Assembly (NCBI RefSeq): GCF_000315625.1
Contig: NW_005434625.1
Location: 389,726 to 453,725 of the forward strand
Origin: Guillardia theta CCMP2712
Taxonomy: Eukaryota > Protista > Cryptophyta
Reading direction: 5' to 3'
DNA: 64,000 nucleotides
The notes below the pieces were generated by a model. That model searched no databases, was not told where the DNA came from, and worked only from the letters and a program-made list of their open reading frames with translations. The position numbers and the translations under genes are program-made. Shown here piece after piece: positions 28,300-61,589 of the stretch. Within the stretch, counting starts at the first letter, position 1, and every line of letters begins with the position of its first letter.

Positions 28300-30158
28300 C
28301 TTGCCAAGACCGAATCGAGATTCTTATGCACACTGTTTCATTCCAGGCCTTGAAGATGGCCGAGAAACTACGGAGAACGATTAGCGACGCGTCTTCAGTC
28401 GTGACAACAGGTGCATTTCCGATTGGGCTATCATCAAAAAGTTTTTTCGACTTCTTTCATCGCTGTAATTCACAGGCGGGAGATATTTTGCGTACATATT
28501 CCAGCCATTACAACATGAGCAGATGAAAGAGTCTTCATCCACATACCCATGTACAAACAAGGATCACCATGTAACTTCTCCACTGCAACTTTTCCCCAAA
28601 TTCCAATCCTAATCCTAATCTTACTGTCCAGTCTTTGCTTTCCTGTCTGCTCTCCTCTCCTGTCCGTTCATCTTTTCAACGACTCAACAATGTGATGAAG
28701 CCAGCATGGCCGCAGAGTTTTCCAATCTACAATGTCACTACTAAGACCTCGATAAACTACGAGTGAACTTCTGTTTACCTGCTTTTCCTTGAGCTCATAA
28801 ACATCCTGTGGATTCTGCATTTCACGCTATCTGACCAGCACATCATTTTCATTTTTCATTCAACCGCTCTGCTCATTGCTATTCACGCATGAAATTGCAC
28901 CTACTACTCTCGTTCCGTGCTCCTCGACGGCGCTGTCTAAACATGGTGCTTTTGAGGCCGCCTATAACTACCCCTTTGTTCTACCACCCCCTCTTGTCTG
29001 TGAAAACAACCCACCCTAGAATAAGTATATAAAACTTCGAATCATCACCTACCCAGCACTTCAGCAGAACTACCCCATCAGGTTCGTTAGTACCCCCTCA
29101 CATAGCTAATTCTACCCGTACTCTTGACTCCATATCACACCCCTTCTTGACTATCACCCCCCATAATCAATCACCTACCCCTTAATAGATCCCTTGTTGT
29201 AGCTGGTACCCATGCATGGTGTACCATATACGGGTGGATAAATCATGGAGGAGTGAAAGGAGGGGGTACTATGATACTGATTTCACGGGGACAGGGACCG
29301 GTACCTCGACAACTTGGTTGTTGTGTAGGGGAGGGTAGCAAACCAGGAAATTGTCGGGTGGGGTGGAAAGAAGGGGTAGTTTTCCAAATGATCAGCTAGA
29401 TTTAGTAAGGGTGGGTGGTGAAATTTTCAGCAAAATAGCCGGCCCGCCTCGTTTGCATCGGTTAGCCCCGGGGCCCGGCGTGGAATCTCCGGGCCCCGGG
29501 CTCTGGCCCGCACTGAGCGGAGACTTGACTCGTCAATCAAAGGTCATGTACGGGTACCCATAGTCCCATAGAGAAATTCTGGGGAAAGGCAGGGTAGGGG
29601 TGGTAGCCAGTGGCGGCGACTCATGGCGGAAAGGTACGATCATGCTCGGCTGAGAGGCAGGAATTCAAGTAGGAAGTGAGAGGCTGTATCATCATCATGC
29701 CATGACAGTGACGGTGGCAACGAGTCGGAGATAGAGTTAAGCTAGCTGCAGGCTGGTACTGGCAGGTCTGAAGCATGTATGGTGCTATGCCAGGCAAGTT
29801 CGGGCCGCGCTAGAGGGTGAGGAGCTGATATTCAGTAGGAACTGTGGAACCGAGTGAGGGGGTGAGGAATGAAGTGAAGACTGGGGAAGGGAAAGCCTCT
29901 GAGGGAGTGGGGAGGGATAGACGTAAGGGATATGACAGCTAGCTTACGATGAGCCAGTATTGTTTTTCGATATGCCGCCAGGTTGATGGTTGAGCAGGTG
30001 ATTTCTAGTCGATTGACTTTCCGTCGAGATCTGGAAGGGGGGAATCATTGCACAAGTCATGAAAAACAAGATATCGGCTTGAGATGCAGATGATCGGATG
30101 CTTATGGGGATGAGCAGGAGTTGTGCACTGCTACACTGAGAGGTCTTCTCGTCCAGAC

Positions 30159-31432
30159 ATGATGGCCAAGGCCAGATCGTTGCTCGTGCTCTTGTGCTCC
30201 CTCCATGCGATGTGCGATGAGACTCATCAGAGGTCCATGTATACCAACGTCGTAGACTTCGTTTGCTCCCCAGGAAACGCTACCAGCCTGTGGGGCGCCA
30301 AGACCGACAGGGCAGCCTGGTTCGGGAGGAGCGACATGGCGGTGGCGGTCAAGGACAACCACGTTTGGGTCATGGGCGGACAGAGAGGAGCGTCAGGAGC
30401 TTTCGAGCTCATGAACGACGTTTGGAAGAGTGCGGACGGCGCAGCCTGGACGTCAGTGACGGGCAAAGCGCCATGGGCGGCTAGAAGAAAGTTTGGAGGT
30501 CTGACGTTCAACTCCAAGCTCTGGGCGATGGGAGGAACGCTGTCAGCGGTGGAGTCCAACGAGCGGCACACGTCCAACGCTGTCTGGTCCTCTGCGGACG
30601 GGGTCACGTGGCAGGCAGTGAGGGAGGACTCTGCGTCCTGCACCGGGAGCACATGTGACCCGTCGTCGTCGTCCTACATGTGGGCGCCGCGTCACTCGAT
30701 GGTGGCAGTTGACTTCCTAGGGAAGATCTGGATCATATCGGGAGTGAGAAGCGACTACGACCAGTACGCGGCAGCGAATCAAGACTTCATCCACGACATA
30801 TGGTTCACTGATAACGGGGTCAGGTGGACCCGGGCCGCGAACTCGACGCCATGGCAGGACTGCCGGTCTGTGGTGGGGGCAGTCCACCGACTGCAGCTGT
30901 TCATCATGGCGGAGTCGCGAGAGCTGCGCTACTACTACACCACGTGGATCTCGAGCGATGGCGTCACGTTCAAGGAGGCCCGCCAGGCCTGTGCCGTCTC
31001 CGGGCAGCCCGTCGGAGGGCTGGTGTCGGCAGGAGGAAGCCTGATGGTGTTCGCGGTCTCTGACCGGCTGCTGGGGGATCAGGAGGTGCTGCTGTGGTAC
31101 ACGAACTCGACGACTGCAGAGGACGCGATCTTCTATGCGACCAACTCGTCGGTGGCCAACGGGCCGAGGCGAGGAGCAGGGTACACGACGTTTGCTGGGG
31201 AGGTCTGGCAGATAGGAGGGAGCTGCTTGAACTGCGGGATGTCGACAGTGATGAACGTGAGGAGGAGGACGGCGGGGAGGAGAGAGAGAGGAGGGATGAA
31301 TGAGAGGAGAGAGCCTCAGAGCTGGATCTGACGACTTTGTAGGATGCTTTTAGTGACGTTTACTTCTCCTCCGGACTGACAATGTTTTCGACATTCAGCC
31401 AGTCATCGCAGAGTAGAAGGCCAAACATGTAA
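30159..31432 (+). CDS. Secreted Kelch/Asp-box (BNR-like) beta-propeller protein
   Basis: Signal peptide MMAKARSLLVLLCSLHAMC. Repeats VWVMGG...DVWKSADGAAW, LWAMGG...VWSSADGVTW, IWIISG...IWFTDNGVRW, WISSDGVTF, VWQIGG. One 3' intron (~31257-31342), then DAFSDVYFSSG...RRPNM*. Confidence 0.8.
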
Positions 31433-39559: not shown

Positions 39560-40143
39560 AGATCCCCATTGATCAAAAAACTTTATTCGACCCCACGAAT
39601 TTGTGTTTGACCTCAGGGTAGGGGTGCCTACCCCTACCTTTCAGATTGATTGGAAACGAGATGTACCACCCCACCCCCTCGGATAGTAGTTTTGACCCCA
39701 ACCACGGACTCCCGGTGCATCGTTCACGGAAACGGCCCGGCCTGCTAAACGCTTTTCACAGAGAGGCAAAAAAGAAAAGAAAAAATCCGCTGAAAGAGGC
39801 TTCATAACCTGATATGTTGAGGTCTCTGGCTGGAAGTGTTATTAGGTCCGGCCGGCGACCGGGCCCGGGCTGTCGTCAGGGCCGTCAGGATTCACTCAAC
39901 TCGTTAAAGTTTACTCAAAGTTTATGTTTAAAATAAGTTGTTTTAAAAGCGCTATGTTGAACTGATGCAGGGCGGTGAAACGAGTAGGAGGCGGGAGGAG
40001 GAGCGAGCGAAGAGGAATGCTCAGATTGAGGAGATGGCTGCGAGATGATAACAGGACAAGCACGGAGGACAAGGACAACGATGGCAAGCAAGGGCAAGTA
40101 GGCTACAAGTGGCTCTGGACACAGGAAAAACATACGACGGGAG

Positions 40144-43100
40144 ATGCATAGTGAAACTGGTGATTTCATAGCGACTGCGCACACGAACTCTATCAGCTCA
40201 AGGCTGCTAGGGAATTCGAGCAGGTCGTACAATCCTGTGCGTCCCTTCTCCTTGAAAGGGCGGCTCTTCCATGTCTTCCTCTCCTACCGAGTTGCAACTG
40301 AAAAAGACGCCGTGAAGTTGATCTACAAACAGCTTCGAGAGGTCTCCACCTCAAGGCTCCCCATCCCCGCCGAAGGGAGAGGTCAGTGGTGCGGCTTCAC
40401 CAAGAAGCCCTCGGGCCTGCCTCCTCAATGTGCCAAGGTGTTCTTGGACGTGGAATGCCTGGAAGACGGGAAGAACTGGGAGGACTCGTTTGCTCGCGGA
40501 GTCGTGCACACCATGGTCTTCGTTCCCCTGCTCTCGTGGACGGGGGATGGGGGAGGGTCGCTGGGAGGGATGATGTCGCTGAAGGATGCGGACAGAGTGG
40601 ACAACGTGCTTCTCGAGTACATCATCGCGTTGGAGTGGACGCGGATGGAGGACAGCTCTCTTCGCTCGATCCTCCCCGTGTTCATGGACAGGGACTCGGA
40701 GGGGGCAGAGGTGAGGTTTCCGATGGAGGAGCTGAAGAATCTCCCCGACCGTCCTTCCAAGATGACCAACGACACGGCAGAGCAGCTGCTGCGGAGCTTC
40801 GGCGTGAAGGAAGCGCAACTGATGGAGATGAGAAGCAGGTCGGTGAAGGAGACGGTGGGGATGATCTTGAAGCTGCAGGGGATCAAGCTGTCGCAGATGT
40901 CGTCAGAGCAGCCCTTCACTGACTGCGCCGAGAGGATCCTGCACGTGGTTCGTAGGGACATAGACTCGTGGAGGAGGAGGAGGTTTCGTTTCAACACGCC
41001 GACGGGGGTGGAGCTGCTGGACTGGCTACAGGAGAACAGCCTGATGCGGGCAGCTCCCATCCTGAATGCTGCAGACCTGCACACGCTCGACATCATAGCG
41101 AAGCTGAGGAGAGAGGACGTGGATCGCTTGTGGACGCTGTTCAGCATAGCTACTGGGGTTGAGAATGGGACTGAGTTAGAGACTTTGGGCCTGCGACTGC
41201 GACTGGCGGCTGCGATCGAGAAGCTAAAGGAGGACGAGCGATCGCACAAGCTGGCGAGGAGGCTGGATGACTACACAGACGTGCGAGGATCTGCACTGTC
41301 CTGCACGTTCTCCAGTAACGCTTGTGAGATTGCAATGTCAAAGGTGTTCTTCCAGGTTGCCGTAGCGCTCTATGGTAGTGGTCTTATCCTCTTTGGGGCT
41401 TACGTGATGGCGAACCCGTTCCTGTGGTACGGGGGGGGGAGGACGAGGCTGCTGTGGGCAAACTACTTCATCATGGCTCCTCTGAATGAGATCGGGCTAG
41501 GCATTCTTATTGTCTACATTGCCTACGTCGGTCGGTACAAGTCTCCTCTAATTGCTCGCCGGTTTGCTCAGAGGATGTTCATGGTGAACAGCTTCACGGC
41601 TGTCCTCGCCCTTCTCGTCGAGATCCTGCAGCATGCTCTGTCCTTGCACGACCCGAGCTGGACGTGGGGAACGTCAGTGGAAACAGGCTTTCTGCTCTGG
41701 ATCATCATCAGTATAATCTGCGGTTTGGTTCTCTCCCTCCTCCTCCGCTACCGACAGGAGTATCTAATTTTCGGCATCTTCATCTACTGTGGAGCAGTCC
41801 AGCTTCTTATGCGGTCAACCCGATCCTCAATGGAGGAGCCAACAAGTATGTCGGGGACCTGATGCTTGTGATCGCCTGCTCATACTTCGCCATGATTCCG
41901 ATTCTCTTGGTTCTGTGGGTGCGAGTGCGTAAGGAGGCGTCGCAGTATCTCAGCCGGGACGTGGAGCGATACAACGAGCGATGGAAGCGGGTGAGGGAGA
42001 GGTTCAACATCGAAAGCCTCAGCGTGGCGAGTGAGCCCGCTCCTCATCGCGGTAAGGTCGCAGATGTACAGGTTGTGGTGGACTCGAGCCGCTGCGAGGA
42101 CGATCGTGAAGCGTTCCGTCGCGTCCTGGTGCTGACTCGCCGCATCTCCTCCATCATCACCAACGACTCTCGCGCCCTATCGCGCCAGGACAAGTGGACC
42201 AACATAGTCTGGCTTCTGACCTCGCACTTCGACCAGAGCAGGAGGTACTCCCTCAACGGCAAGGCGCGGCAGCGATCCTCGGACATCGACCAGCTGTTTG
42301 CACAGGCCGCGAGCATCAACGAGCCTGTCCAGCAGGTGCTGAGCTCCATCGTGGAGAGCTACCTGGCGACTCAGACGCATGAGAAGGAGCAACCGACGAG
42401 CGTTCCATCCCCAGCTGAGCTTCATGCGACCTTTGGGGAGGAAGAACCTGTCAAGAAGTTTGAGTTTGTACCTGGGCCGGTGAAGCAGCCGCTGCGGAGC
42501 TTCCAGAAGTGCATCAGGGCTTACAGGAGGTGAGGGCTGAGGGAGAGGGGATGGGGGAGAGGGGAGCAGAAGCAAGAAGAAGAAGAGTGGGGACAAAAGG
42601 ACGAGGGGGAGAAGGAGGAGGTGGTGGTGGTGGTGGTCGAGGATCAGGAGGAGGCTGCTGGAGGGGGGTGGGGGGGGGCGTCGGGCTGTTGGGGAGTGAG
42701 GGAGTGAGTTGGATGGCAGGGACGTTGGGCTGCTGACGGATCTTGTGCGATGTACGTTTGTGGTGGAGGACATGCAGACGCTGCTGGGGGTGCTGATGAG
42801 CCTCCTGGAGCGATCGGTCGTCGGCTTCTTCACCCAGCACGACCTGTACGGGGAGGGAGGGGAGGGAGGAGGAGAGGGCCAAGGGAAGAAGCTGTTCCGC
42901 ATCACCAAGGTGAAGAATCGCTTCGACGAGGAGTCGAAGGACTTCGAGGAGGCGACGGGGTTCCGCAACCTCTCGCTCTCCCTCGAGGTCGGCTGGACGA
43001 GCGACGAGCGGACCTGCCACTTCGTTCCTGTCGCCGCGTGGGAGCGGAACGGGGAGGTGGAGACGCACATCGTGGAGGTGCAGGTGAACACGAGCTGATG

Positions 43101-43316
43101 CAGATGCAGATGGGAAGGACGTGAGGGGGGGTAGGGGGGAAAGAGGGTGGAAGGGGAGGAGCAAGCGATGGGGGTTGTCTGGAGGAGGAGAGGAGGGGTG
43201 TGGTGTAGGAGGTGACTTTCATGCGGGTGCAGGTTCACCTCCGGCCGCTGTATGAGGTCACCAAGGAAGGAAGCCACGGGAGCTACGTGTTCTGGCGAGA
43301 TCTCCTCGCCAAGTGA
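40144..43316 (+). CDS. TIR-like + SAM-like + multi-TM + RelA/SpoT-like nucleotidyltransferase fusion protein
   Basis: TIR: FHVFLSYRV...KVFLD..CLEDG.NWEDSF.RG...VFVPLLS...DNVLLEYIIALE...ILPVF. SAM-like: ELLDWLQENSL...LHTLDIIAKL. About 6 TM segments. After introns 42530-42719 and 43084-43232: GPVKQPLRSFQKCIRAYRRDVGLLTDLVRCTFV...KVKNRF...GFRNLSL...HIVEVQVHL...SHGSYVFWRDLLAK*. A frame change near 41800 needs a 38-nt intron (41760-41797) or a 1-nt indel. Confidence 0.75.
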
Positions 43317-44005
43317 AGCTGTTTTTACGGCGGTACTTTCGAAACGGTTTCCATGAAGTTTCTCAGTGTCTAGTTTATCTTGCCGCGTTGTCAATTTGCT
43401 TTCATCATTTTTATCAAGTCTAGCTAGGTCAATAAATCTGGTATCAGTTATCAGGCCGCGCCCGGCCAGTTCACTGACTGTCACTACTTAGTACGTCGTA
43501 CTTCCGAGGCCATACGGCGAGGCTGAGAGGGAAAAGATCGTACAGAACATCGACTCGACGCTGATCACCGTCACAAACCGTGCACCGGCAGTGGCCGGCC
43601 CTTAGTAAAAGCGTCACAGGCTGGCCCGGGGGTGGGCCGCTAGTACGAGTCCCGGCCCGGCCCGGCCGGATTGAATTTGTGATTTTGCAGGGGTAGGGGT
43701 ACTCGTGTCTGATGACCCGACCTGAAACAGGTTTTTCCTATGATTTGTAGGGTGGGGGTATCAGCCCCGGACTGGCCCGGGCTGGGAGGGTGCGCCATGC
43801 TGAGGGCAGGGTGACATGGAGTGATGGGGGGAGGAGGGAGGAGCATGCAGATGGTGCTAAGGAAGCGATGATGAAGAGTTTTCACAGGCTCGTAGTAGGT
43901 GGAGGGGGGGGGGGTTGTGAAAACGACATAAATGTCCGGAGCTACTTCCACCAGAGTCCTCTGTCTGACTGTAGCTGAAGACTTTTCGCAGGTGGATCAC
44001 AGGAC

Positions 44006-48478: not shown

Positions 48479-49220
48479 CCTGCAGAACCTTTCCTGGAGG
48501 CCTCCTCCCTCACGCTCCGCACGCAGACCTCGCCTCCTGCTCTACCTCCAGGACAGCAAACCTGGTCGTCGGTCTCGAATGAGGAGTGGAATTCACCTGC
48601 TGTCCGTCTCCAAGTGCCCTCCCTGCCCTCGCTTCACGCGCCTCGCGCTTCTCCCATTCCACATCCCCTCTGCATGAGCTCTGCGATTCCTGGACCTCAT
48701 CCCCCACCATACACACCTCTCATCTTTTCAGTCATCTTTTGGCCGGGCCCTCCGGCGGCCGGGCCGGCGGCACTGTGAGTCCTCCCCGACCAACTTGCTT
48801 CTGGTCAATCTTGACCCCCACCCCATCAAATGAAAGTTGGAAACCAAGTACCCCTGATTTCATATGACAAATTGAGGGAAAGGTACCCTAGCAAGCGGGG
48901 TCGTTAATATTCATACCCTCACATTCGAGAAAGAACCAGCCCCTTCTCGCCATGCAAAGCGAGGGCGACAAGGGAAGGAGCAGGCGAGAGGGAAGAAGTA
49001 TATGTGGCGAGAGGAGAGCTTGCGTAGAAGTGATAGATGAATCAAAGGAACCTGAGAAGTAGCAGCTAGTCCCGTCGATCAGGAGAGACAAGAGCATCTT
49101 TGTCCTGGAAGAAGGCACAGTCGACTTTGCGAACTCTCTCACTCTCGGCTCATAATCGTGTTCATGGAGAATGCGTGTATCTGTTGATTACAAGATATTG
49201 AGGGCAGGTTGATCCTAATC

Positions 49221-50300
49221 ATGCCAAGCATTTTGCACAGACTTGTTCTTTGTGCACACGACTCGCTCATTTTGCTCCTCGGCCTCACTTTTGCGCTTTG
49301 GATTTGGTTGTCAACATTTTCTGCTGGAAACATCGTTCCTATCCTTTCATTGCTGTTCCTGAAGCCGTTTGCTCCATGGATGCACGAGGTGTTTTTGGAC
49401 TGCCTGGCCGGTGTGAGTTGGAACTCGATCATCGAGTACGCAGAGCGTGTCTGCAAGTTCAAGACCATCGTAACGGGAAACCTTGCCGAGCTCATGGTCC
49501 GGTACCCAGGAAACAAGTTGATCCTATGCAACCACGTATCCGCCGTTGACGTGCTTGTGATATTCTTTGTTGCATCAAAGTATGGCAAGACGGGAAATCT
49601 CAGGTTTTTCGCCAAGAAGGAACTCATCTTTGTTCCGATCTTCGGCCTGGCTGCTTACTTCTTGAACTTTGTTTTCCTGGAAAGAAACTGGATCAAGGAC
49701 ATGTCCCGCATACGACAGAAGCTCCTGGAAATTGTCGGCAGCTCCAGGAAACGTTCGTTCTGGTTAGTGATATTCCCTGAAGGAACAAGGATTGACAACT
49801 CAAAACTCAAGAAGTCCCAGGAGTTTGCAATCAGTAGAAACCTCCAGCCATTGAAGCATTTGTTAATACCTCGCGTGAAAGGGCCGTCTATGTCCATCCA
49901 AATTTTAAAAGAAGAGATCGATTCGATTTTGGACCTTACTATCGCATACGACAAGCGCTACGGAGATTATGGAAACACCAGGCCCTCGTTGGTTGACGCA
50001 TTTCTGAAACGAAAGATAGAGTGGAAGGTTCACGTGAACGCAGATTTGATCCCTGTCTCAGATATCCCCCAAGACCAGGAAAGTTTAGATGATTGGCTGC
50101 ATCAAATCTTTGTTCAGAAAGACCAGAAACTGGAGCGTTTCCACGCTGACGGTGTTTTTCCAGCCAGGCCTTGTAACTTTGACGTGTTGCCAGGATATCA
50201 ACCTTTCATTCATATCATCGTTTACACGCTTGTTGCAGCCTTTGGCCTCTGGACTTTTGTTCAGGGTATATCGTCGATTGTTGCGTATGCTCGGCATTGA
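49221..50300 (+). CDS. 1-acyl-sn-glycerol-3-phosphate acyltransferase (AGPAT3/4, LPAT2-5-like), intronless
   Basis: Acyltransferase motifs CNHVSAVD (HX4D), FFAKKELIFVPIFG, FVFLERNW, WLVIFPEGTR, HLLIPRVKG, ILDLTIAY; N- and C-terminal TM segments. Confidence 0.93.
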   Translation: MPSILHRLVLCAHDSLILLLGLTFALWIWLSTFSAGNIVPILSLLFLKPFAPWMHEVFLDCLAGVSWNSIIEYAERVCKFKTIVTGNLAELMVRYPGNKLILCNHVSAVDVLVIFFVASKYGKTGNLRFFAKKELIFVPIFGLAAYFLNFVFLERNWIKDMSRIRQKLLEIVGSSRKRSFWLVIFPEGTRIDNSKLKKSQEFAISRNLQPLKHLLIPRVKGPSMSIQILKEEIDSILDLTIAYDKRYGDYGNTRPSLVDAFLKRKIEWKVHVNADLIPVSDIPQDQESLDDWLHQIFVQKDQKLERFHADGVFPARPCNFDVLPGYQPFIHIIVYTLVAAFGLWTFVQGISSIVAYARH

Positions 50301-50963: not shown

Positions 50964-52190
50964 TTATCCAAGAGAGAAGGTGTTGTTGGTGGGAACGTAG
51001 CTGATGTTCTGCATGGGCATGGCCATGAACATCGGATTGGCGGACTGCATAGGAGCCGTCTTTGACTTGAGCTCGTTGTCATCAGCATTCAAAGAGATGT
51101 TCGGCGCGGCAGTGGAGGCAGGCTTAGGGGCCATGCAAACCTTGTAGCCCAAGACAAGGAGAGCGAGCAAAGAGACGCCCAACAAGCTTCCCAGCACGGC
51201 AGAGACGATGGTGAGGTTCTTCTGAGCTTCCGAATCAGTGCTGCATTGGAAGTCCGGCTCCTTGACACCATGGGTAGCGCATGGGGAGGATGATCCAGTC
51301 GTGTAGATGGTCCTGTCTCCAATGGGCTGAAGGGGACGATAGTTTCCGTAAACCGCAAACTTCTCAGTGGATCCAGGGATAGTGACAGCCCACAGCTTGT
51401 CCATGGTTGCCCTGGTGATGGTAATGGGCGAGTCCATCACGATCCAGGTGACAACTTCATTGCATCCAGGAGTGGTCAAACCGCCAGCGTAAGAGTAGAA
51501 GCTTGCCTTGTCATTGACGAGCTGAGCGAAGTTGACGTCTCCGTTCATCGCAACGCCATCGGTCGTAGCCCGGGAAGCCTCATTGCCGATGGTGGTAAGA
51601 GCAGCAGACTCGGAGCTGCCAAGAGTGTACATTTGGCCCACCACAAGAAGAGCGTCCGAGTTGCCGCTGCTGACGGCATCAGAGATAGTGGGGTATTTGG
51701 AGTTGAAGTGAACAAAGTGAGCTTCAAGGGGATACTGAACTCCTTGGATGTAGTGCTCACTTCCTTCAGTTGCGGAACGACCCCAGTGGAAATGCATCTG
51801 AGCAAGCTTCCAGGTAGAATCTCCATCTGTGGTCGACCTTCCGACTCTGAATGCCAAGTTGCCCGCGTTGAGGACAGGAGCGTTGCTCGTAACGTCGAGC
51901 TGGAGGGCATGGCCAGTGTTCTTGATGTTAAACTTATTCGGTTTGTCCCAATTGGCTGAGTCAAACTTGATAGATGGAGCAGTACCATCGAACGCCTTGG
52001 CTCCGCAAAGGTCGACAGGAGTCTGCTGCTTGCCAGTTGAGCATACTCCACCCCACTTCATGGGGCCTTCCGAGGAATCACATTGATTGTAATTCCAAGG
52101 CGATCCAGCACGTCGCGCTTGATGACTCAAGATGCTTGGGCTTGCAACAGCATGGGCCACCAGGAGCAACGGGATCAATGTTTTCAACAT
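50964..52190 (-). CDS. Alpha-carbonic anhydrase, type I membrane topology (signal peptide + C-terminal TM)
   Basis: MLKTLIPLLLVAHAVA leader; WNY, CSTGKQQTPVDL, NTGHALQL, QMHFHWG (Zn-binding His pair), GSEH, YPLEAHFVH (third His), YAGGLTTPGCNEVVTWIV, GNYRPLQP; TM IVSAVLGSLLGVSLLALLVLGY. Confidence 0.95.
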   Translation of the reverse strand: MLKTLIPLLLVAHAVASPSILSHQARRAGSPWNYNQCDSSEGPMKWGGVCSTGKQQTPVDLCGAKAFDGTAPSIKFDSANWDKPNKFNIKNTGHALQLDVTSNAPVLNAGNLAFRVGRSTTDGDSTWKLAQMHFHWGRSATEGSEHYIQGVQYPLEAHFVHFNSKYPTISDAVSSGNSDALLVVGQMYTLGSSESAALTTIGNEASRATTDGVAMNGDVNFAQLVNDKASFYSYAGGLTTPGCNEVVTWIVMDSPITITRATMDKLWAVTIPGSTEKFAVYGNYRPLQPIGDRTIYTTGSSSPCATHGVKEPDFQCSTDSEAQKNLTIVSAVLGSLLGVSLLALLVLGYKVCMAPKPASTAAPNISLNADDNELKSKTAPMQSANPMFMAMPMQNISYVPTNNTFSLG

Positions 52191-52969
52191 CTGTGAGACA
52201 TGTATCAGCAACCTTGTCATTGAAAAGAAAGTCACGTCGTTTCTGGAGCTACAGGATCTCATGAGACTCTTGAAGCTGCCAGCTTCTTGCTCGTAGCATG
52301 CACATTCCATTTGATTCTTGTAAATGTCTTTTGCCTTCCTCATTGTCCTAATCCTCTACACCCTCTGCATCCTCCATCCTTGTCCTGCTTCTTTGTCTTG
52401 CTAGCCTCTTCCTCTGCTCTCATGGCGTTCACGAGCTCGCAGTCTTGGTCTCGGATGCGAGCCTACGGAGGCTTCTTTATACGTCCGGATCCTACTCCAC
52501 CCACCCCACCCCCTCCCTTCTCCATGTTGTGATCTTTTCGCCACCCCTTCTTTCTCCCTTGTATACCCCCTGAGCCTACCGGTGACATTGAACATTGGAT
52601 CTCATGGACCACCAAGACCACCCCAGCACTTCGCTGTAAAAGCCCTCACCGATGCTACACGGACGCCTCTGGTCATTTGTACGGGACCCACCCCTGGGTC
52701 CGGAGAGTCTGCACGGGCCAATTCCGAGCGATTCACCTAGGGCACAGGGGTAGTGGAGCCTCCGGGGGGGCCCCCGGCAGAGGATATTACAGCATGCTAG
52801 TAAGGTTGATCATCATAGCGAGTAGTAGGAGGGTAGGAACTTTCAAGTTTCTCTGCTCTTTTCAGGTCTCGGCCCCCCACTGACGCCGAGTAGAAATGAC
52901 CAGAACTCGGAAGGTAGTCGCGTTAACTTCCATGTCTCCGTGGTCTATGGACTCTCCCATAGGCTGGTA

Positions 52970-57414: not shown

Positions 57415-59587
57415 ATGTCGAACTTCCCCAACTTGCAGGCAGACTTGCAGAGCTTGTTGCAGTCACCGCAGTATGTCCCTCTAGCAAGCAACCCGCAAGG
57501 GAACTCTGCCATGATGCAGCAGAACATGCAGTTCCGGGATCCAGGACAGCACCTGCATCTGCATCAGCAGCAGGCAGCTGCTACTTGGATGACAACACCA
57601 CAGCAGCAGCAGGTCTTGCAGTGTCAAGGGACGAGAGGAGGAGAGGAACGCAATGCTGACATCTTGTTTGCAGGAGAGAATGACGGAGTTGGCGATGCAA
57701 GAGCTGCAGAATTTCCTTAGGCAGCCCGCAATTCCCCCGGACAACAACTTGCCCTATCAGGTGTACCCTGTGGCCCATCGCAGCCAGGAGTTCGAAGGGC
57801 TGTACTCCAGCATGCAGGGCATAAGACAGCCAGTTGAGTTTCCTAGTGCTCAGCTACCAAATGCAAGGGAGTGGATGGAGCAGCCGCAGCCATGGCCAGC
57901 ACAGCCAATTTCACTGATTCCGCAGGGCGCTTGGGCAGGGCAGGGCAGGGAAAGGACGCTACAGGGGGATTTGCAGCATCGAGCTATCTACGAGACTGTT
58001 CTGACGCAGATGCGTCAAGGGAGCGGTTATGGGATGAACGTGAACAGCGAGGTGCAGCAGCTTAACAGTCAGCTTTCGAACTGGTCGGGGTACCAGCGGG
58101 GATTCAGGGGAAAGAGCAACTTCCGTGGAGGAGGGAGTGGGCAGTTTGTGTCGAATTTTGGAGCGGAAGGAAAGAGATGGCAGCGGGTAAAGCCGTCCAA
58201 GGGTTTGCTGGACAACTTCGAAGGCGACGGGCCTGGTGAGGGTTTTGACCTTTCCCCTGATCTTGTCTCACCCATAACACTACCTAGCATGCATCAAACT
58301 GCTGAATGAATACGGACAGAAGAACAGCTGTACCGTACAGTACGATAGTCCGATCATCCCGACAAAGTAGGGCTTGATAATGCTCGCCTTCTCGCACCTG
58401 ACACGATGATCAGGCCTGACGGGGAGGAGAAGGACAGCTCACTCACATGCTCCGTCACGGTGATTGTGGTAGACAGCAACGGGCAGACGGTCGTGCAGGG
58501 CAAGGCAGAGGGGATGACGAAGAAGCTTGCGAAGCAAGGAGCAGCAGCACAGGCGATCTGCACGCTGTTCCCACAGGTGAGCACCAGATGGATCCATCTC
58601 CCTCCTCCCTTCCTGCTTGCTGAGAATCGTTCAGGAGGAGGAGAATTTGAGGTCCAAGGGTCTGCTTGAGGACGTAGTGAAGCCAAGCAGCACTGCAAGT
58701 GAGTCCCTCTCTTGATAGAGTATGCCGGTGACCTGTAACCAGCAGCTCATGGAGGAGAAACTGGAAGCTTGGAGCAGGGAACGGAGCAGGGGGAGCAAGA
58801 GGGAGCGAGTGGTGCCAGGAGCGCGATGATGGTCAACCCTGTGCTGCATCTCCAGCATGCATGCAGCCGCCTGCACAAGATGATGGAGTTCAGCATGCGG
58901 GAAGAAGGACCTCCGCATAGCAAGACATTCCATGCAGACGTGGTGATTGAAGGAGTGGTGATGGGTAGAGGAACCGCCCCGAAGAAGAAGGGAGCGCAAG
59001 GGTTGGCGGCCCGCGAGGCTCTTGGCAAGCTTGAGCTGGAAGGATGGTCAAACTTGCAGCCTCCTCCAGGCATGGATGGGGAGCGAAGCAACAAGCGCAA
59101 GCGACATGAAGAAGGGGAGGAGGAAGTGGATGGGGAGGGGGACTGGATCCCTGAGGAGAAGAGACGGAGCTCTCAGCCAGCGACGGAGGGGAAGCAACTG
59201 GATGTGACTCAGTCGACGAAACTGCTTCATGCCCATTGCTCCAAGAACCGACTCAAGTTGGAGTACAAGGTCGTCGAGGCTGGCCCGGCGCATGCAAGAA
59301 TCTTCACGGTGGAGGCGGTGATAGAAGGCAAGGTGTGCGGTTGTGGAGTGTCTGGGAAGAAGAAGGCGGCGACTGCGCTAGCGGCTCAGCAAGTGATCGA
59401 GAGCATGGGAATCGACGTGGTGAGCCTCTTCAAGGGAGGAAAGGGCTCTGCTCAAGGGAAGGTGCGGCCGGAAGATGAGGGGGTGAACGAGGTGCTGGAA
59501 GAAGTTATCAGACGAGTGGAGGCTGACCCTGAGCATGTGGGAGGGACGAGGAACACCGATGGAGTGATGAACGAAGGAGAATGTTGA
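57415..59587 (+). CDS. Double-stranded RNA-binding protein with three dsRBM domains and a Q-rich/RGG N-terminus
   Basis: dsRBM1 CIKLLNEYGQKN...VQGKAEGMTKKLAKQGAAAQAI; dsRBM2 NPVLHLQHAC...EGPPHSKTFHADVVIEG...GTAPKKKGAQGLAAREAL; dsRBM3 STKLLHAHC...GPAHARIFTVEAVIEG...SGKKKAATALAAQQVI. Upstream exons (from ~56690) are possible. Confidence 0.88.
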
Positions 59588-59625: not shown

Positions 59626-61589
59626 CTAAACCACAGAAGTCCCTTCCTCCCTTGCCCCCTCATCACTCTTGACAAACATTTTGTCGTCTGCTTCAAAGTG
59701 CTCAGGGCCTCGCACATCGTCCCTCCTTCCCTGCTCACCCGCATCGCTCTCATCCCGCAGCAGGGCATGGGCTGTCAATGTCAGAAGGAGCAAGATAGGA
59801 ACTAGCGGGCGGAGAAGCGACTTGGTGACTGTGGTGACGTCAGCAGGTAACAGGGAGCAGAAACCTTCCTCACATGTAGAAGAAAGCTTGAGGGTGAGCA
59901 GGTGAAGGAAGCTAGTCACACAGAGTCCCCCTCCGAAGGACGAGCATCGGGACTTCGACGGAAGAAAGGTGGAGAAGAGAGCGAGGGAGAGGCTGTGGAG
60001 AGCCATGATGAGGAAGAAGAGGAGAGCTCCAAAGAGGAGCGAGACGAGGCCGTGGAAGGGAGGGATGAGCATGAAGCAGGCTCCAAGTACCTGCCAACGA
60101 TACCATGAGAACGCGCAGCTCAAGGTTAGAGGACGAGGGGGGAGAGAGCAGAGGTAGGGGAGGAAGACGAAGACAGGAGGATACAATCGCAGGAACAATG
60201 CAGACGAAGTGGACGAGGTCGAAGTGGTTGACTTGGTCCCACAGCTGCAGATTCGTGAGCAGGGCGTGTCAAACTGAGAGTTGTGACATCTTACAGTCAA
60301 GGTGAAGAGCGCCGAGCTGACGTGGAGGAGAGCGAGTTGCAGGATCTTCACTTTCCCCTTCTCGCTCCCGGCCATGTTCAGGACCACACTCTCGTCCTCC
60401 ATCAACTCAGCCGCCACAATTCCCGAGCAGACAGCGCACGCAACCCAAGTGATGGAGCACTTGGCTAGCCCCCGCCTCTCCCTCCTTCTCTGCGCCTCCG
60501 CTTCATCCCGTCCCCCCACCAGCGACACCGCCCCCGTGAACCTCACCTCCTGCCCGTTCTCCTCCGCCATGTAGTCGAGGACGTTGAGGCAGAGGCCCCG
60601 CATCCCCTCCTCGTACAAGAAGCTCAGCGACTCGCAAAGCTGGTTCCGCATGAGGAACCAGACCGGCAGCTCCACCACTGCGCACGACAGGAGCAGGAGA
60701 CGCCACTCGAGAGTCGCCGAGTAGGACTCGCCCAGCACCGCGTCCAGCACGGACCGAGCTCCTATCAAGTACAGAGACCCTATGTTTGCGCCCACGCATG
60801 CGACGATGAGGGCGGAGCCGAAGCGCCAGCGCGGCGGGCAGATCTCCATGGCCAGTGGGAGAGCGCAGGACAGCCTGCCTCCCGCCAGCAGCGAGCAGGA
60901 GCAGCGGAAGGCAAGGAGGAAGACGGCCGTTGGTGCGATGGAGGAGAGCAGCATCATGATCATGTAGGCGGAGTCGAGGAAGAGGAGGCTGACAAATCTC
61001 CCGTAAAAATCTGCCGCGTGTCCTGCTAGCAAGGAGCCGGCAGAGAAGAAAGTGATACATGCCATCTGTCCCGTCGTGAGCTCCTCGGCCGAGAGCTCCC
61101 ACTGATGCTCCAGCAGGGGCGGGAGCTGCCACCAAAGCGCTGTTTCCATGCCGACAACCATCTGCATGCTGAGTGAGATGAGAGCGGAGGGCCTGAAGGG
61201 TCACCTGGGACAGGATGAGCGCCTGCATGGCCTTGAGCTGGAAACTCCCGAAGCCCGCAGCGTCGAGGGCGCCGTCGAGGTCGATGGGATCAAGATCGCT
61301 GCAGCATGGCAGACAGACTCAGACGAGATGAGAGCGCATGGCACACCCTCACCTCTCATCCACGTCACTCTGATGGCTGCTCATCATCAAAGAACAAGTT
61401 ACATGCAAGAGTACAGAAAGAAACGCATGAGACCTGGAGGCTTGATCACTGTCTCGGCCTGATGAAACAAGTCTCAATCATCATCGTCACAGCACAAGTA
61501 TCACTGACACCTGCTGGCGCCATGTCTGCCTCCTCAAGAACTGGCTTATCGCCATCGGGACCTTCATTCGATCGCATGATGTTGCGCAT
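59626..61589 (-). CDS. MFS transporter (SV2/organic-cation-like)
   Basis: IDLDGALDAAGFGSFQLK, EHQWELS, AGHAADFYGR (motif A), LAMEICPPRWR, EWRLLL, CESLSFL; many TM segments; several introns. Confidence 0.8.

Follow-up and report, generated by a model that had tools for sequence, protein, structure and literature searches.

A transcribed Guillardia theta gene predicted to join a TIR domain, a SAM domain, six membrane helices and a RelA/SpoT-like synthetase domain

We analysed a 64,000-nucleotide stretch of the genome of Guillardia theta CCMP2712 (G000:C49:389726-453725; hereafter the window) and found that a single gene on its forward strand, GUITHDRAFT_140871 (window positions 40144-43316; XP_005830004.1; UniProt L1J4G8), combines a TIR domain, a SAM domain, six hydrophobic helices and a C-terminal domain with the fold of RelA/SpoT homologue (RSH) synthetases. 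TIR NADases and toxic alarmone synthetases both rank among the chief weapons that bacterial immunity and warfare base on nucleotides, and in L1J4G8 both weapon types occur on one algal membrane protein. Each of the domains belongs to a known kind; it is their combination that appears to be new. Our literature search returned no description of a TIR-SAM-membrane-RSH fusion, nor of an expanded protist family of the synthetase domain, which agrees with a preliminary description of this stretch, made from its letters alone, that knew of no characterised protein of such architecture. We modestly favour the view that the gene product, a six-pass membrane protein, is an effector of the kind used in innate immunity or programmed cell death.

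The gene consists of three exons, with a start ATG at 40144 and a stop TGA at 43314-43316. A 572-amino-acid open reading frame (ORF) beginning at 40144 matches the GUITHDRAFT_140871 protein (P0002, 902 amino acids) at 100%. As RNA evidence we used assembled contigs, rather than single reads, aligned to positions 39900-43500. Both GT..AG introns were spliced out in the contigs of three runs from three studies (X1, X2 and X7), and the joint of intron 2 was also present in one raw RNA read (X19). A single RNA contig of 3118 nucleotides (nt) covers 39986-43441 and includes the TIR and the synthetase halves. The proposal that four parts are carried by one spliced gene is thereby borne out, and in these contigs the TIR and nucleotidyltransferase halves do not sit on separate mRNAs. 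A similar second copy of the gene lies nearby (see below). The 5' and 3' ends specific to the present copy, copy 1, are covered by RNA contigs with 0-1 differences, and since the 5' stretch is unlike copy 2, we conclude that copy 1 is transcribed.

Each of the four domain calls was supported by computational tests at a level far beyond chance. For the N-terminal domain, the models support an NADase-type TIR whose nearest counterparts are the TIRs of SARM1 and of plant TNL proteins. We modelled residues 30-385 with AlphaFold2 (AF2) from a family alignment (pLDDT, the predicted local distance difference test, 83). The best VIA-align match to this model was the human SARM1 TIR (6o0u; Z 14.2, root-mean-square deviation (rmsd) 2.2 Å, 140 of 140 residues, 29% identity), followed by RPP1 and RUN1 (Z 13.9-13.5) and AbTir (12.6); TIR-1 and SPARTA TIRs were matched too, and the TIRs of MAL, MyD88 and TLR1 ranked lower. 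Foldseek returned the plant TNL TIRs RUN1, SNC1, RPS4 and L6, plus SARM1, at probability 1.00. When searched as a profile, the sequences FLSYR and FLDVECLEDGK (FLDxxCLEDGK) aligned with strand A and the BB loop of SARM1; the VFLSY and VFLD motifs quoted in the preliminary description are indeed found at 40270 and at about 40432. Roughly 30 additional residues separate helix A from strand B, and a helical extension follows at the C-terminal end of the domain. Helix C spans model residues 125-137; Glu158, in the motif DNVLLEY, sits at its start and is at least 90% conserved in the family alignment. A Glu at the catalytic position had been proposed here; full-length superposition, as opposed to a residue-by-residue comparison, suggests that E158 is equivalent to the catalytic Glu of SARM1, E642.

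The segment following the TIR, already described as SAM-like, can be assigned to the SAM domains by profile comparison. We built a profile from residues 280-370 and their relatives (A5), and nearly all of its matches among PDB sequences were SAM domains. The best of these were SHIP2/EphA2 (1.6e-5) and Caskin (1.6e-4), followed by many Eph receptors and DGK-delta. The Pfam models SAM_1 and SAM_2 matched weakly, in 3-4 of 16 relatives, and the AF2 model places a helical bundle at residues 259-332.

The C-terminal domain had been likened to RelA/SpoT synthetases because its motifs follow the order Syn1-Syn5, and structural comparison leads to the same family. Residues 655-902 (synthetase residues are numbered as in P0002) gave a model with a pLDDT of 88.5 and a predicted template modelling score (pTM) of 0.84. 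It shows the nucleotidyltransferase-like synthetase fold, a mixed beta sheet with helices on its sides. The top 50 Foldseek matches to this model were all RSH synthetases. With VIA-align, 25 RSH entries scored Z 15.3-9.4, and the other nucleotidyltransferases, polymerase X and TdT enzymes, came a step lower at about 8; among individual proteins, the small alarmone synthetases (SASs) SAS1 and SAS2 scored 15.3 and 14.7, Rel 13.6, CapRel 12.1 and 11.8, Tas1 11.2 and FaRel2 7.4. Tas1 showed the highest identity among the VIA-align matches listed, 21%. In a profile search of PDB sequences, Tas1 (6OX6) was the sole RSH protein detected, with an E value of 3.8e-6 when 9 relatives were used and of 6.6e-8 with 46. 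This alignment covers approximately the first 75 residues, from helix 1 to strand 2, and takes in Syn1-Syn2 (PxKxxxRAxQK...DxxxxxDLxRxT). Judged by sequence, then, the synthetase domain is closest to Tas1/Apk1. Tas1/Apk1 is a toxin of the type VI secretion system that turns ATP into (p)ppApp and kills by ATP depletion.

The residues expected of such an enzyme are in place. The motif GPVKQPLRSFQKCIRAYR, within which VKQPLRSFQK lies at 42480, holds K739 (42483-42485), R743, K747 and R750. Exon 2 contributes LTDLVRC (at 42733), with D761 at 42739-42741 and R764 at 42748-42750, then a Gly/Glu-rich loop, FRITKVKNRF, GFRNLSLSLEVGW with R836, and IVEVQ, with E873 at 43075-43077 and Q875 at 43081-43083; the remaining quoted motifs, GFRNL, EVQVH and H..Y, are located in exons 2 and 3. 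Across 46 relatives, K739, R743, K747, R750, D761, R764 and E873 are invariant, and Y752, R836, Q875 and R897 are conserved in at least 90%. Mapped onto the model, the conserved residues lie in motif order on the elements of Syn1 (the helix that follows strand 1), Syn2 (where strand 2 begins), Syn3 and Syn4 (E-x-Q, last core strand). In alignments with the canonical RSH of this genome, D761 is matched to a DxxxxR motif (DLIAFR) and E873 to an ExQ motif (EVQIRT), at weak scores (E 0.058 and 0.016). The fold is that of the RSH synthetases and not an unrelated one, and the Asp and Glu that would bind metal are present. Together, the model and the conservation support a RelA/SpoT synthetase fold with catalytic-type Asp and Glu residues and basic residues predicted to bind triphosphate.

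We also considered whether the synthetase could be a tRNA pyrophosphokinase like CapRel and FaRel2, blocking translation at tRNA 3' ends. Both proteins are among the structural matches, and toxic SASs (toxSASs) of their kind act in antiviral defence, as two reports indicate (PMC9712102, PMC11245113). However, the sequence searches gave no match to CapRel or FaRel2, with Tas1 alone detected, SAS1 and SAS2 score structurally above CapRel, and we identified no tRNA-binding feature, all of which makes this substrate quite unlikely.

Six membrane helices had been estimated between the two enzyme-like halves. As assembled, the frame of exon 1 is broken directly after position 41808 (...GAVQLL), and we read the gene through this break with an X and no inserted letters, obtaining a protein of 944 residues. 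In this read-through protein the estimate holds, with hydrophobic segments at residues 401-423, 442-460, 478-501, 516-534, 540-558 and 573-591, and the same six helices are found in the intact protein of a close relative (P0001); it does not hold for the public model P0002, which lacks TM4 and TM5 (transmembrane segments four and five). Clusters of basic residues precede TM1, lie between TM2 and TM3 and between TM4 and TM5, and follow TM6. Because of these basic flanks, the positive-inside rule would put both enzyme ends in the cytosol, and both ends of the protein most likely face that side. Some relatives have an insert of 290-420 residues after TM1 that contains an F5/8 type C (discoidin) domain. 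Such an insert is in keeping with a first loop that faces outward and with a layout like that of a receptor.

We found that the synthetase domain belongs to a large family. A domain profile matched 1832 clusters at E<=1e-3 in a library of 1.84 billion proteins, and the Atlas clusters closest to it come from eukaryotes, among which foraminifera, ciliates and diatoms are named. Six-frame translation of the G. theta genome itself yields at least 175 matches to the Tas1-like domain, many of which are two domains in tandem inside open frames of more than 1000 amino acids, often clustered (examples in G000 are C206:46648-57042, C30:477356-529487 and C1:833992-843057). None of these matches is seen by Pfam RelA_SpoT. 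A genome-wide search with PF04607 returned two canonical RSH genes alone, both with HD_4 and RelA_SpoT domains (G000:C47:131263-132737 and C24:131220-132315); the gene on C47 has an intron and a low-complexity insert within its synthetase domain. GUITHDRAFT_140871 has no HD_4 domain and no plastid targeting signal, which agrees with the earlier judgement that it is not a canonical plastid or long RSH. The search for the same architecture and for expanded paralogues, as the preliminary description had advised, was productive: a close TIR-SAM-6TM-RSH subfamily is present on C49 (two genes), C71 and C229, and C8, C100 and C424 carry SAM-TM-RSH relatives, those on C100 as an inverted pair. Other architectures, from public metagenomes and transcriptomes (P0040, P0013, P0065), join TIR_2, a discoidin ectodomain located after TM1 and RSH domains, or HEPN, kinase, TM and RSH domains. 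Family loci occur in inverted pairs with conversion tracts. We regard this pattern, namely at least 175 domain matches, shuffling with TIR, HEPN plus kinase and a discoidin ectodomain, and inverted pairs with conversion tracts, as an immune-like signature.

The discoidin-containing loop raises the question of whether L1J4G8 is a signalling receptor and not a killer. Such a receptor would sense a membrane or extracellular cue and emit non-lethal cyclic ADP-ribose (cADPR, acting on Ca2+) together with an alarmone such as (p)ppGpp or (p)ppApp, and would thereby tune metabolism or the plastid. Besides the receptor-like layout of some relatives, two further points are consistent with this. In a recent preprint, most of the eukaryotic TIRs tested made cADPR without depleting NAD+ (bioRxiv 10.64898/2026.04.20.719644), and the hydrolase domains of the canonical G. 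theta RSH proteins could clear alarmones. On the other hand, the nearest relative in sequence is a toxin that depletes ATP, and the one G. theta TIR protein tested, L1IYH1, both made cADPR and depleted NAD+ in E. coli (bioRxiv 10.64898/2026.04.20.719644); L1J4G8 and its paralogues are absent from the tables of that preprint. In addition, a large, fast-shuffling family of paralogues fits conflict systems better than housekeeping signalling, and the missing plastid targeting signal and a membrane anchor with predicted cytosolic ends likewise speak against such a receptor. We therefore consider a non-lethal receptor unlikely, if deserving of some weight.

Several observations weigh against reading L1J4G8 as a membrane effector with two enzymes. 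The first is that both enzyme-like domains escape their family models. The preliminary description had recommended checking both structure and Pfam; the structure searches (Foldseek, VIA-align) succeeded, but the Pfam matches of L1J4G8 are below threshold. TIR_2 (E 0.0077, 17.1 bits against a cut-off of 28) is sub-threshold in GUITHDRAFT_140871, whose TIR is too divergent for the model, and the threshold is passed by 6 of the 16 aligned relatives, the best at 1.1e-13. RelA_SpoT (PF04607) gave no match at E values up to 10 when run on the ORF pieces and on P0002, and matched weakly in just 7 of the 46 relatives (best 2e-4). NCBIfam and PADLOC scans of the 46 family members returned nothing meaningful. 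Second, SAS1 and SAS2, which make (p)ppGpp, score structurally above Tas1, and the acceptor nucleotide is not readable from the sequence. Third, expression appears low in the one run for which raw RNA reads were used (18 reads). The divergence of the two domains would be compatible with a non-catalytic scaffold, in which TIR and SAM might serve only for protein interaction, in the manner of animal TLR adaptors, and the RSH-like part might bind a nucleotide as a sensor. We find this very unlikely. Even in distant relatives, the TIR Glu and the synthetase-site residues (basic, Asp and Glu) vary little or not at all, a degree of conservation that is not expected of a dead enzyme, and the TIR resembles catalytic TIRs more than those of TLRs or MyD88.

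The last objection is the frame break, which the preliminary description did not include. As assembled, exon 1 lies in two frames: the first, that of the ATG at 40144, stays open up to 41862, and the second is open from 41664 onward. An identical break is present in the assembled second copy of the gene, and because of the break the GUITHDRAFT_140871 copy is possibly defective. RNA contigs tell a different story, since those of all three runs have 77 other letters in place of the 76 nt at 41809-41884, and in this 77-letter form exon 1 is one frame of 796 codons. We found an orthologue on a metagenome contig from a close Guillardia relative (L013; ENA ERZ930064, k127_56594, 3274 nt), about 95% identical in nucleotide sequence and with the first intron at the same position. 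It carries one base more at the break and has an intact exon 1 of 796 codons (P0001, 796 amino acids, 93% identical). Two Hanusia phi proteins likewise read through the break site.

Two annotated introns that would alter or bypass this region were rejected. One, at about 41675-41798 in P0002, deletes TM4 and TM5, and the RNA contigs run through it; the other, a different intron that bypasses the break in the model of the second copy (P0168), has no corresponding joint in the RNA contigs. Because the RNA contigs cross 41614-41808 without a joint, we consider the introns of the public models to be wrong.

The second copy, GUITHDRAFT_140880 (P0168), is an inverted twin about 20.7 kb downstream of GUITHDRAFT_140871 (G000:C49:453799-457065, minus strand; window positions 64074-67340, just past the window end). 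Similarity between the two runs from the ATG to just past the stop. Identity is about 77% in the first 120 nt and 91-100% in the remainder, reaching 100% over 41810-42540. An inverted pair with a fully identical tract fits gene conversion. Intron 1 of the twin contains an assembly gap of Ns about 750 nt from the break site, which makes a mis-assembly plausible. A third genomic copy that could be the source of the in-frame RNA was sought in the assembly and none was present. The RNA contigs themselves are copy-2-like in 41476-41730 and copy-1-like at their ends. As they are chimeric across long identical stretches, the in-frame form is not assignable to either locus.

These data bear on whether the locus is a recently broken pseudogene, with the twin or other members of the family making the full protein. 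Both assembled copies are one base short of the near relative's contig, the assembly offers no third copy, and in run X1 the contig depth is 5.6 over the copy-1-specific middle block compared with 23.9 over the copy-2-like block. Against this, RNA contigs of three studies carry the in-frame form, the ends specific to copy 1 are transcribed, the 389 codons downstream of the break are free of stops, and the nearby gap in the twin lends itself to a mis-assembly. Moreover, in a codon comparison with L013, the ratio of nonsynonymous to synonymous substitution rates (dN/dS) was 0.13 in the TIR, 0.07 in the SAM domain, 0.22 across the TM helices and 0.37 in the frame downstream of the break; purifying selection has acted on both sides of the break. 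We are doubtful that the locus is a pseudogene, while granting this a greater chance than the receptor discussed above. The break may be a mis-assembly of one copy, an allele, or a real recent break in copy 1.

For the effector that we favour, we infer an NADase and a pyrophosphokinase activity, and with them what the latter makes, how the protein is oriented in the membrane, its switching-on by clustering and a role in immunity or cell death. A cue would cause the protein to cluster through its SAM and TIR domains. The clustered TIR would cleave NAD+ to ADP-ribose (ADPR) or cADPR, and the synthetase would use ATP to pyrophosphorylate a nucleotide, in all likelihood one with adenine as its base. 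As an outcome, NAD+ and ATP would be drained, or nucleotide signals emitted, or both, and the cell would be stopped. A more speculative extension is that the enzyme heads act on each other's products, the synthetase pyrophosphorylating ADPR or cADPR, or the TIR ADP-ribosylating or cyclising a (p)ppApp-type nucleotide. The result would be a composite second messenger of a sort not known from any organism so far, read at the membrane by the protist-wide Tas1-like family, which present domain libraries overlook; we hold this to be improbable. To our knowledge, TIRs are known to have entered eukaryotic immunity and Tas1-like synthetases are not, save for the RelA_SpoT domains of fungal NLRs, which are uncharacterised. 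Should the domain prove active, (p)ppApp-type chemistry would extend to eukaryotes, the double depletion of NAD+ and ATP would become a testable model of a defence or death mechanism in protists, and a large, unannotated and Pfam-invisible protein family would gain an annotation.

The features of the gene are collected in Table 1. Both introns are strongly purine-rich on the coding strand, with runs of GGGGAGG, GAAGAAGAAG and GGTGGTGGT, and no part differs more between the two gene copies than intron 1. The genes flanking GUITHDRAFT_140871 look like housekeeping genes. Neighbouring ORFs encode a Kelch-motif protein (30123-31328, plus strand), an acyltransferase (49209-50297, plus), a eukaryotic-type carbonic anhydrase (50967-52343, minus), a protein with two double-stranded-RNA-binding motifs (58769-59584, plus) and a fragment of a major facilitator superfamily (MFS) transporter (59629-61167, minus); between these ORFs and the TIR-SAM-RSH gene there is no evident link.

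Table 1. Features of GUITHDRAFT_140871 in window coordinates (UTR, untranslated region)
Feature	Position	Strand	Basis or remark
5' UTR	39956..40143	+	RNA contigs start at 39956-39986; unlike copy 2
Exon 1, coding: TIR, SAM, six TM helices, linker, first third of synthetase domain	40144..42529	+	Frame broken after 41808
Predicted TIR domain, residues 41-270, SARM1-like	40264..40953	+	AF2 model, VIA-align, Foldseek
Glu158 in DNVLLEY, start of helix C	40615..40617	+	At least 90% conserved in family alignment A4
Predicted SAM domain, residues 283-372	40990..41259	+	Profile A5 against PDB sequences
Six hydrophobic helices	41344..41915	+	Hydropathy script on read-through protein
76-nt block after frame break: TM5-TM6 loop and start of TM6; most variable stretch among relatives	41809..41884	+	RNA contigs, relatives
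Predicted RSH-like synthetase, first part: long helix 1, strand 1, motif GPVKQPLRSFQKCIRAYR	42231..42529	+	Profile, model
Intron 1, 190 nt, GT..AG, purine-rich	42530..42719	+	Joint in RNA contigs of X1, X2 and X7
Exon 2, synthetase core	42720..43083	+	RNA contigs, motifs
Intron 2, 149 nt, GT..AG	43084..43232	+	RNA contigs of three runs and one raw read
Exon 3, coding: last synthetase helix (VHLRPLYEVTKEGSHGSYVFWRDLLAK) and stop at 43314-43316	43233..43316	+	RNA contigs, model
3' UTR	43317..43441	+	RNA contig coverage; unlike copy 2

Among known systems, the best structural matches to the synthetase domain are SAS1/RelQ and SAS2/RelP (5DED, 6FGK and 6EX0; Z 15.3-13.2, rmsd 2.6-3.2 Å, 152-160 residues), with which it shares the Syn1-Syn5 motif order. 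These are, however, free-standing bacterial homotetramers that make (p)ppGpp, and HMMER detects no similarity between them and the L1J4G8 domain. The toxSASs CapRel, FaRel and FaRel2 also share the RSH fold, arrest growth on activation and, like the protein proposed here, place sensing and a toxic synthetase in one polypeptide. They differ in being soluble proteins of bacteria or prophages that have a pseudo-zinc-finger domain (pseudo-ZFD) as antitoxin or a separate antitoxin and that act on tRNA or make (p)ppApp, and they have no sequence match to L1J4G8. Tas1/Apk1 of Pseudomonas aeruginosa has the same fold over 144 aligned residues. It is a toxin that bacteria secrete, equipped with a delivery domain and matched by a cognate immunity protein, whereas the domain in L1J4G8 would be the cytosolic tail of a six-pass eukaryotic membrane protein, has a Gly/Glu-rich insert and no known immunity partner, and is encoded among genes that look like housekeeping genes. 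None of the contextual features of Tas1 or of toxSAS modules accompanies it.

Eukaryotic precedents are more scattered. A 2011 report already described divergent SASs that stand alone in fungi, Dictyostelium and diatoms (PMC3153485). The nearest eukaryotic precedent is set by fungal NLRs in which RelA_SpoT is the N-terminal effector domain (Dyrka et al. 2014, PMC4986451), likewise innate-immune-type proteins with an RSH-like domain as the presumed effector. Whereas the fungal NLRs are soluble STAND NTPases with repeat sensors and a RelA_SpoT domain that Pfam detects, L1J4G8 has no NTPase, combines a membrane anchor with TIR and SAM domains, and has a synthetase domain invisible to Pfam. On the TIR side, L1IYH1 of the same organism resembles L1J4G8 in its helix-C motif (D.VL.E) and its C-terminal helical extension, as judged by eye only, but it is the product of a different gene, is 1337 amino acids long and has its TIR at the C-terminus. 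The closest TIR counterpart is SARM1: the TIRs superpose fully, strand A and the BB loop are alike, the Glu at the catalytic position is kept, and in both proteins SAM adjoins TIR. SARM1 is nevertheless ordered ARM-SAM-SAM-TIR and L1J4G8 TIR-SAM-6TM-RSH, with a single SAM, no ARM domain, a second enzyme domain, and a TIR set apart by its helical extension and by some 30 inserted residues. The TIR of L1J4G8 is thus SARM1-like, in a protein that stands outside the SARM1 family.

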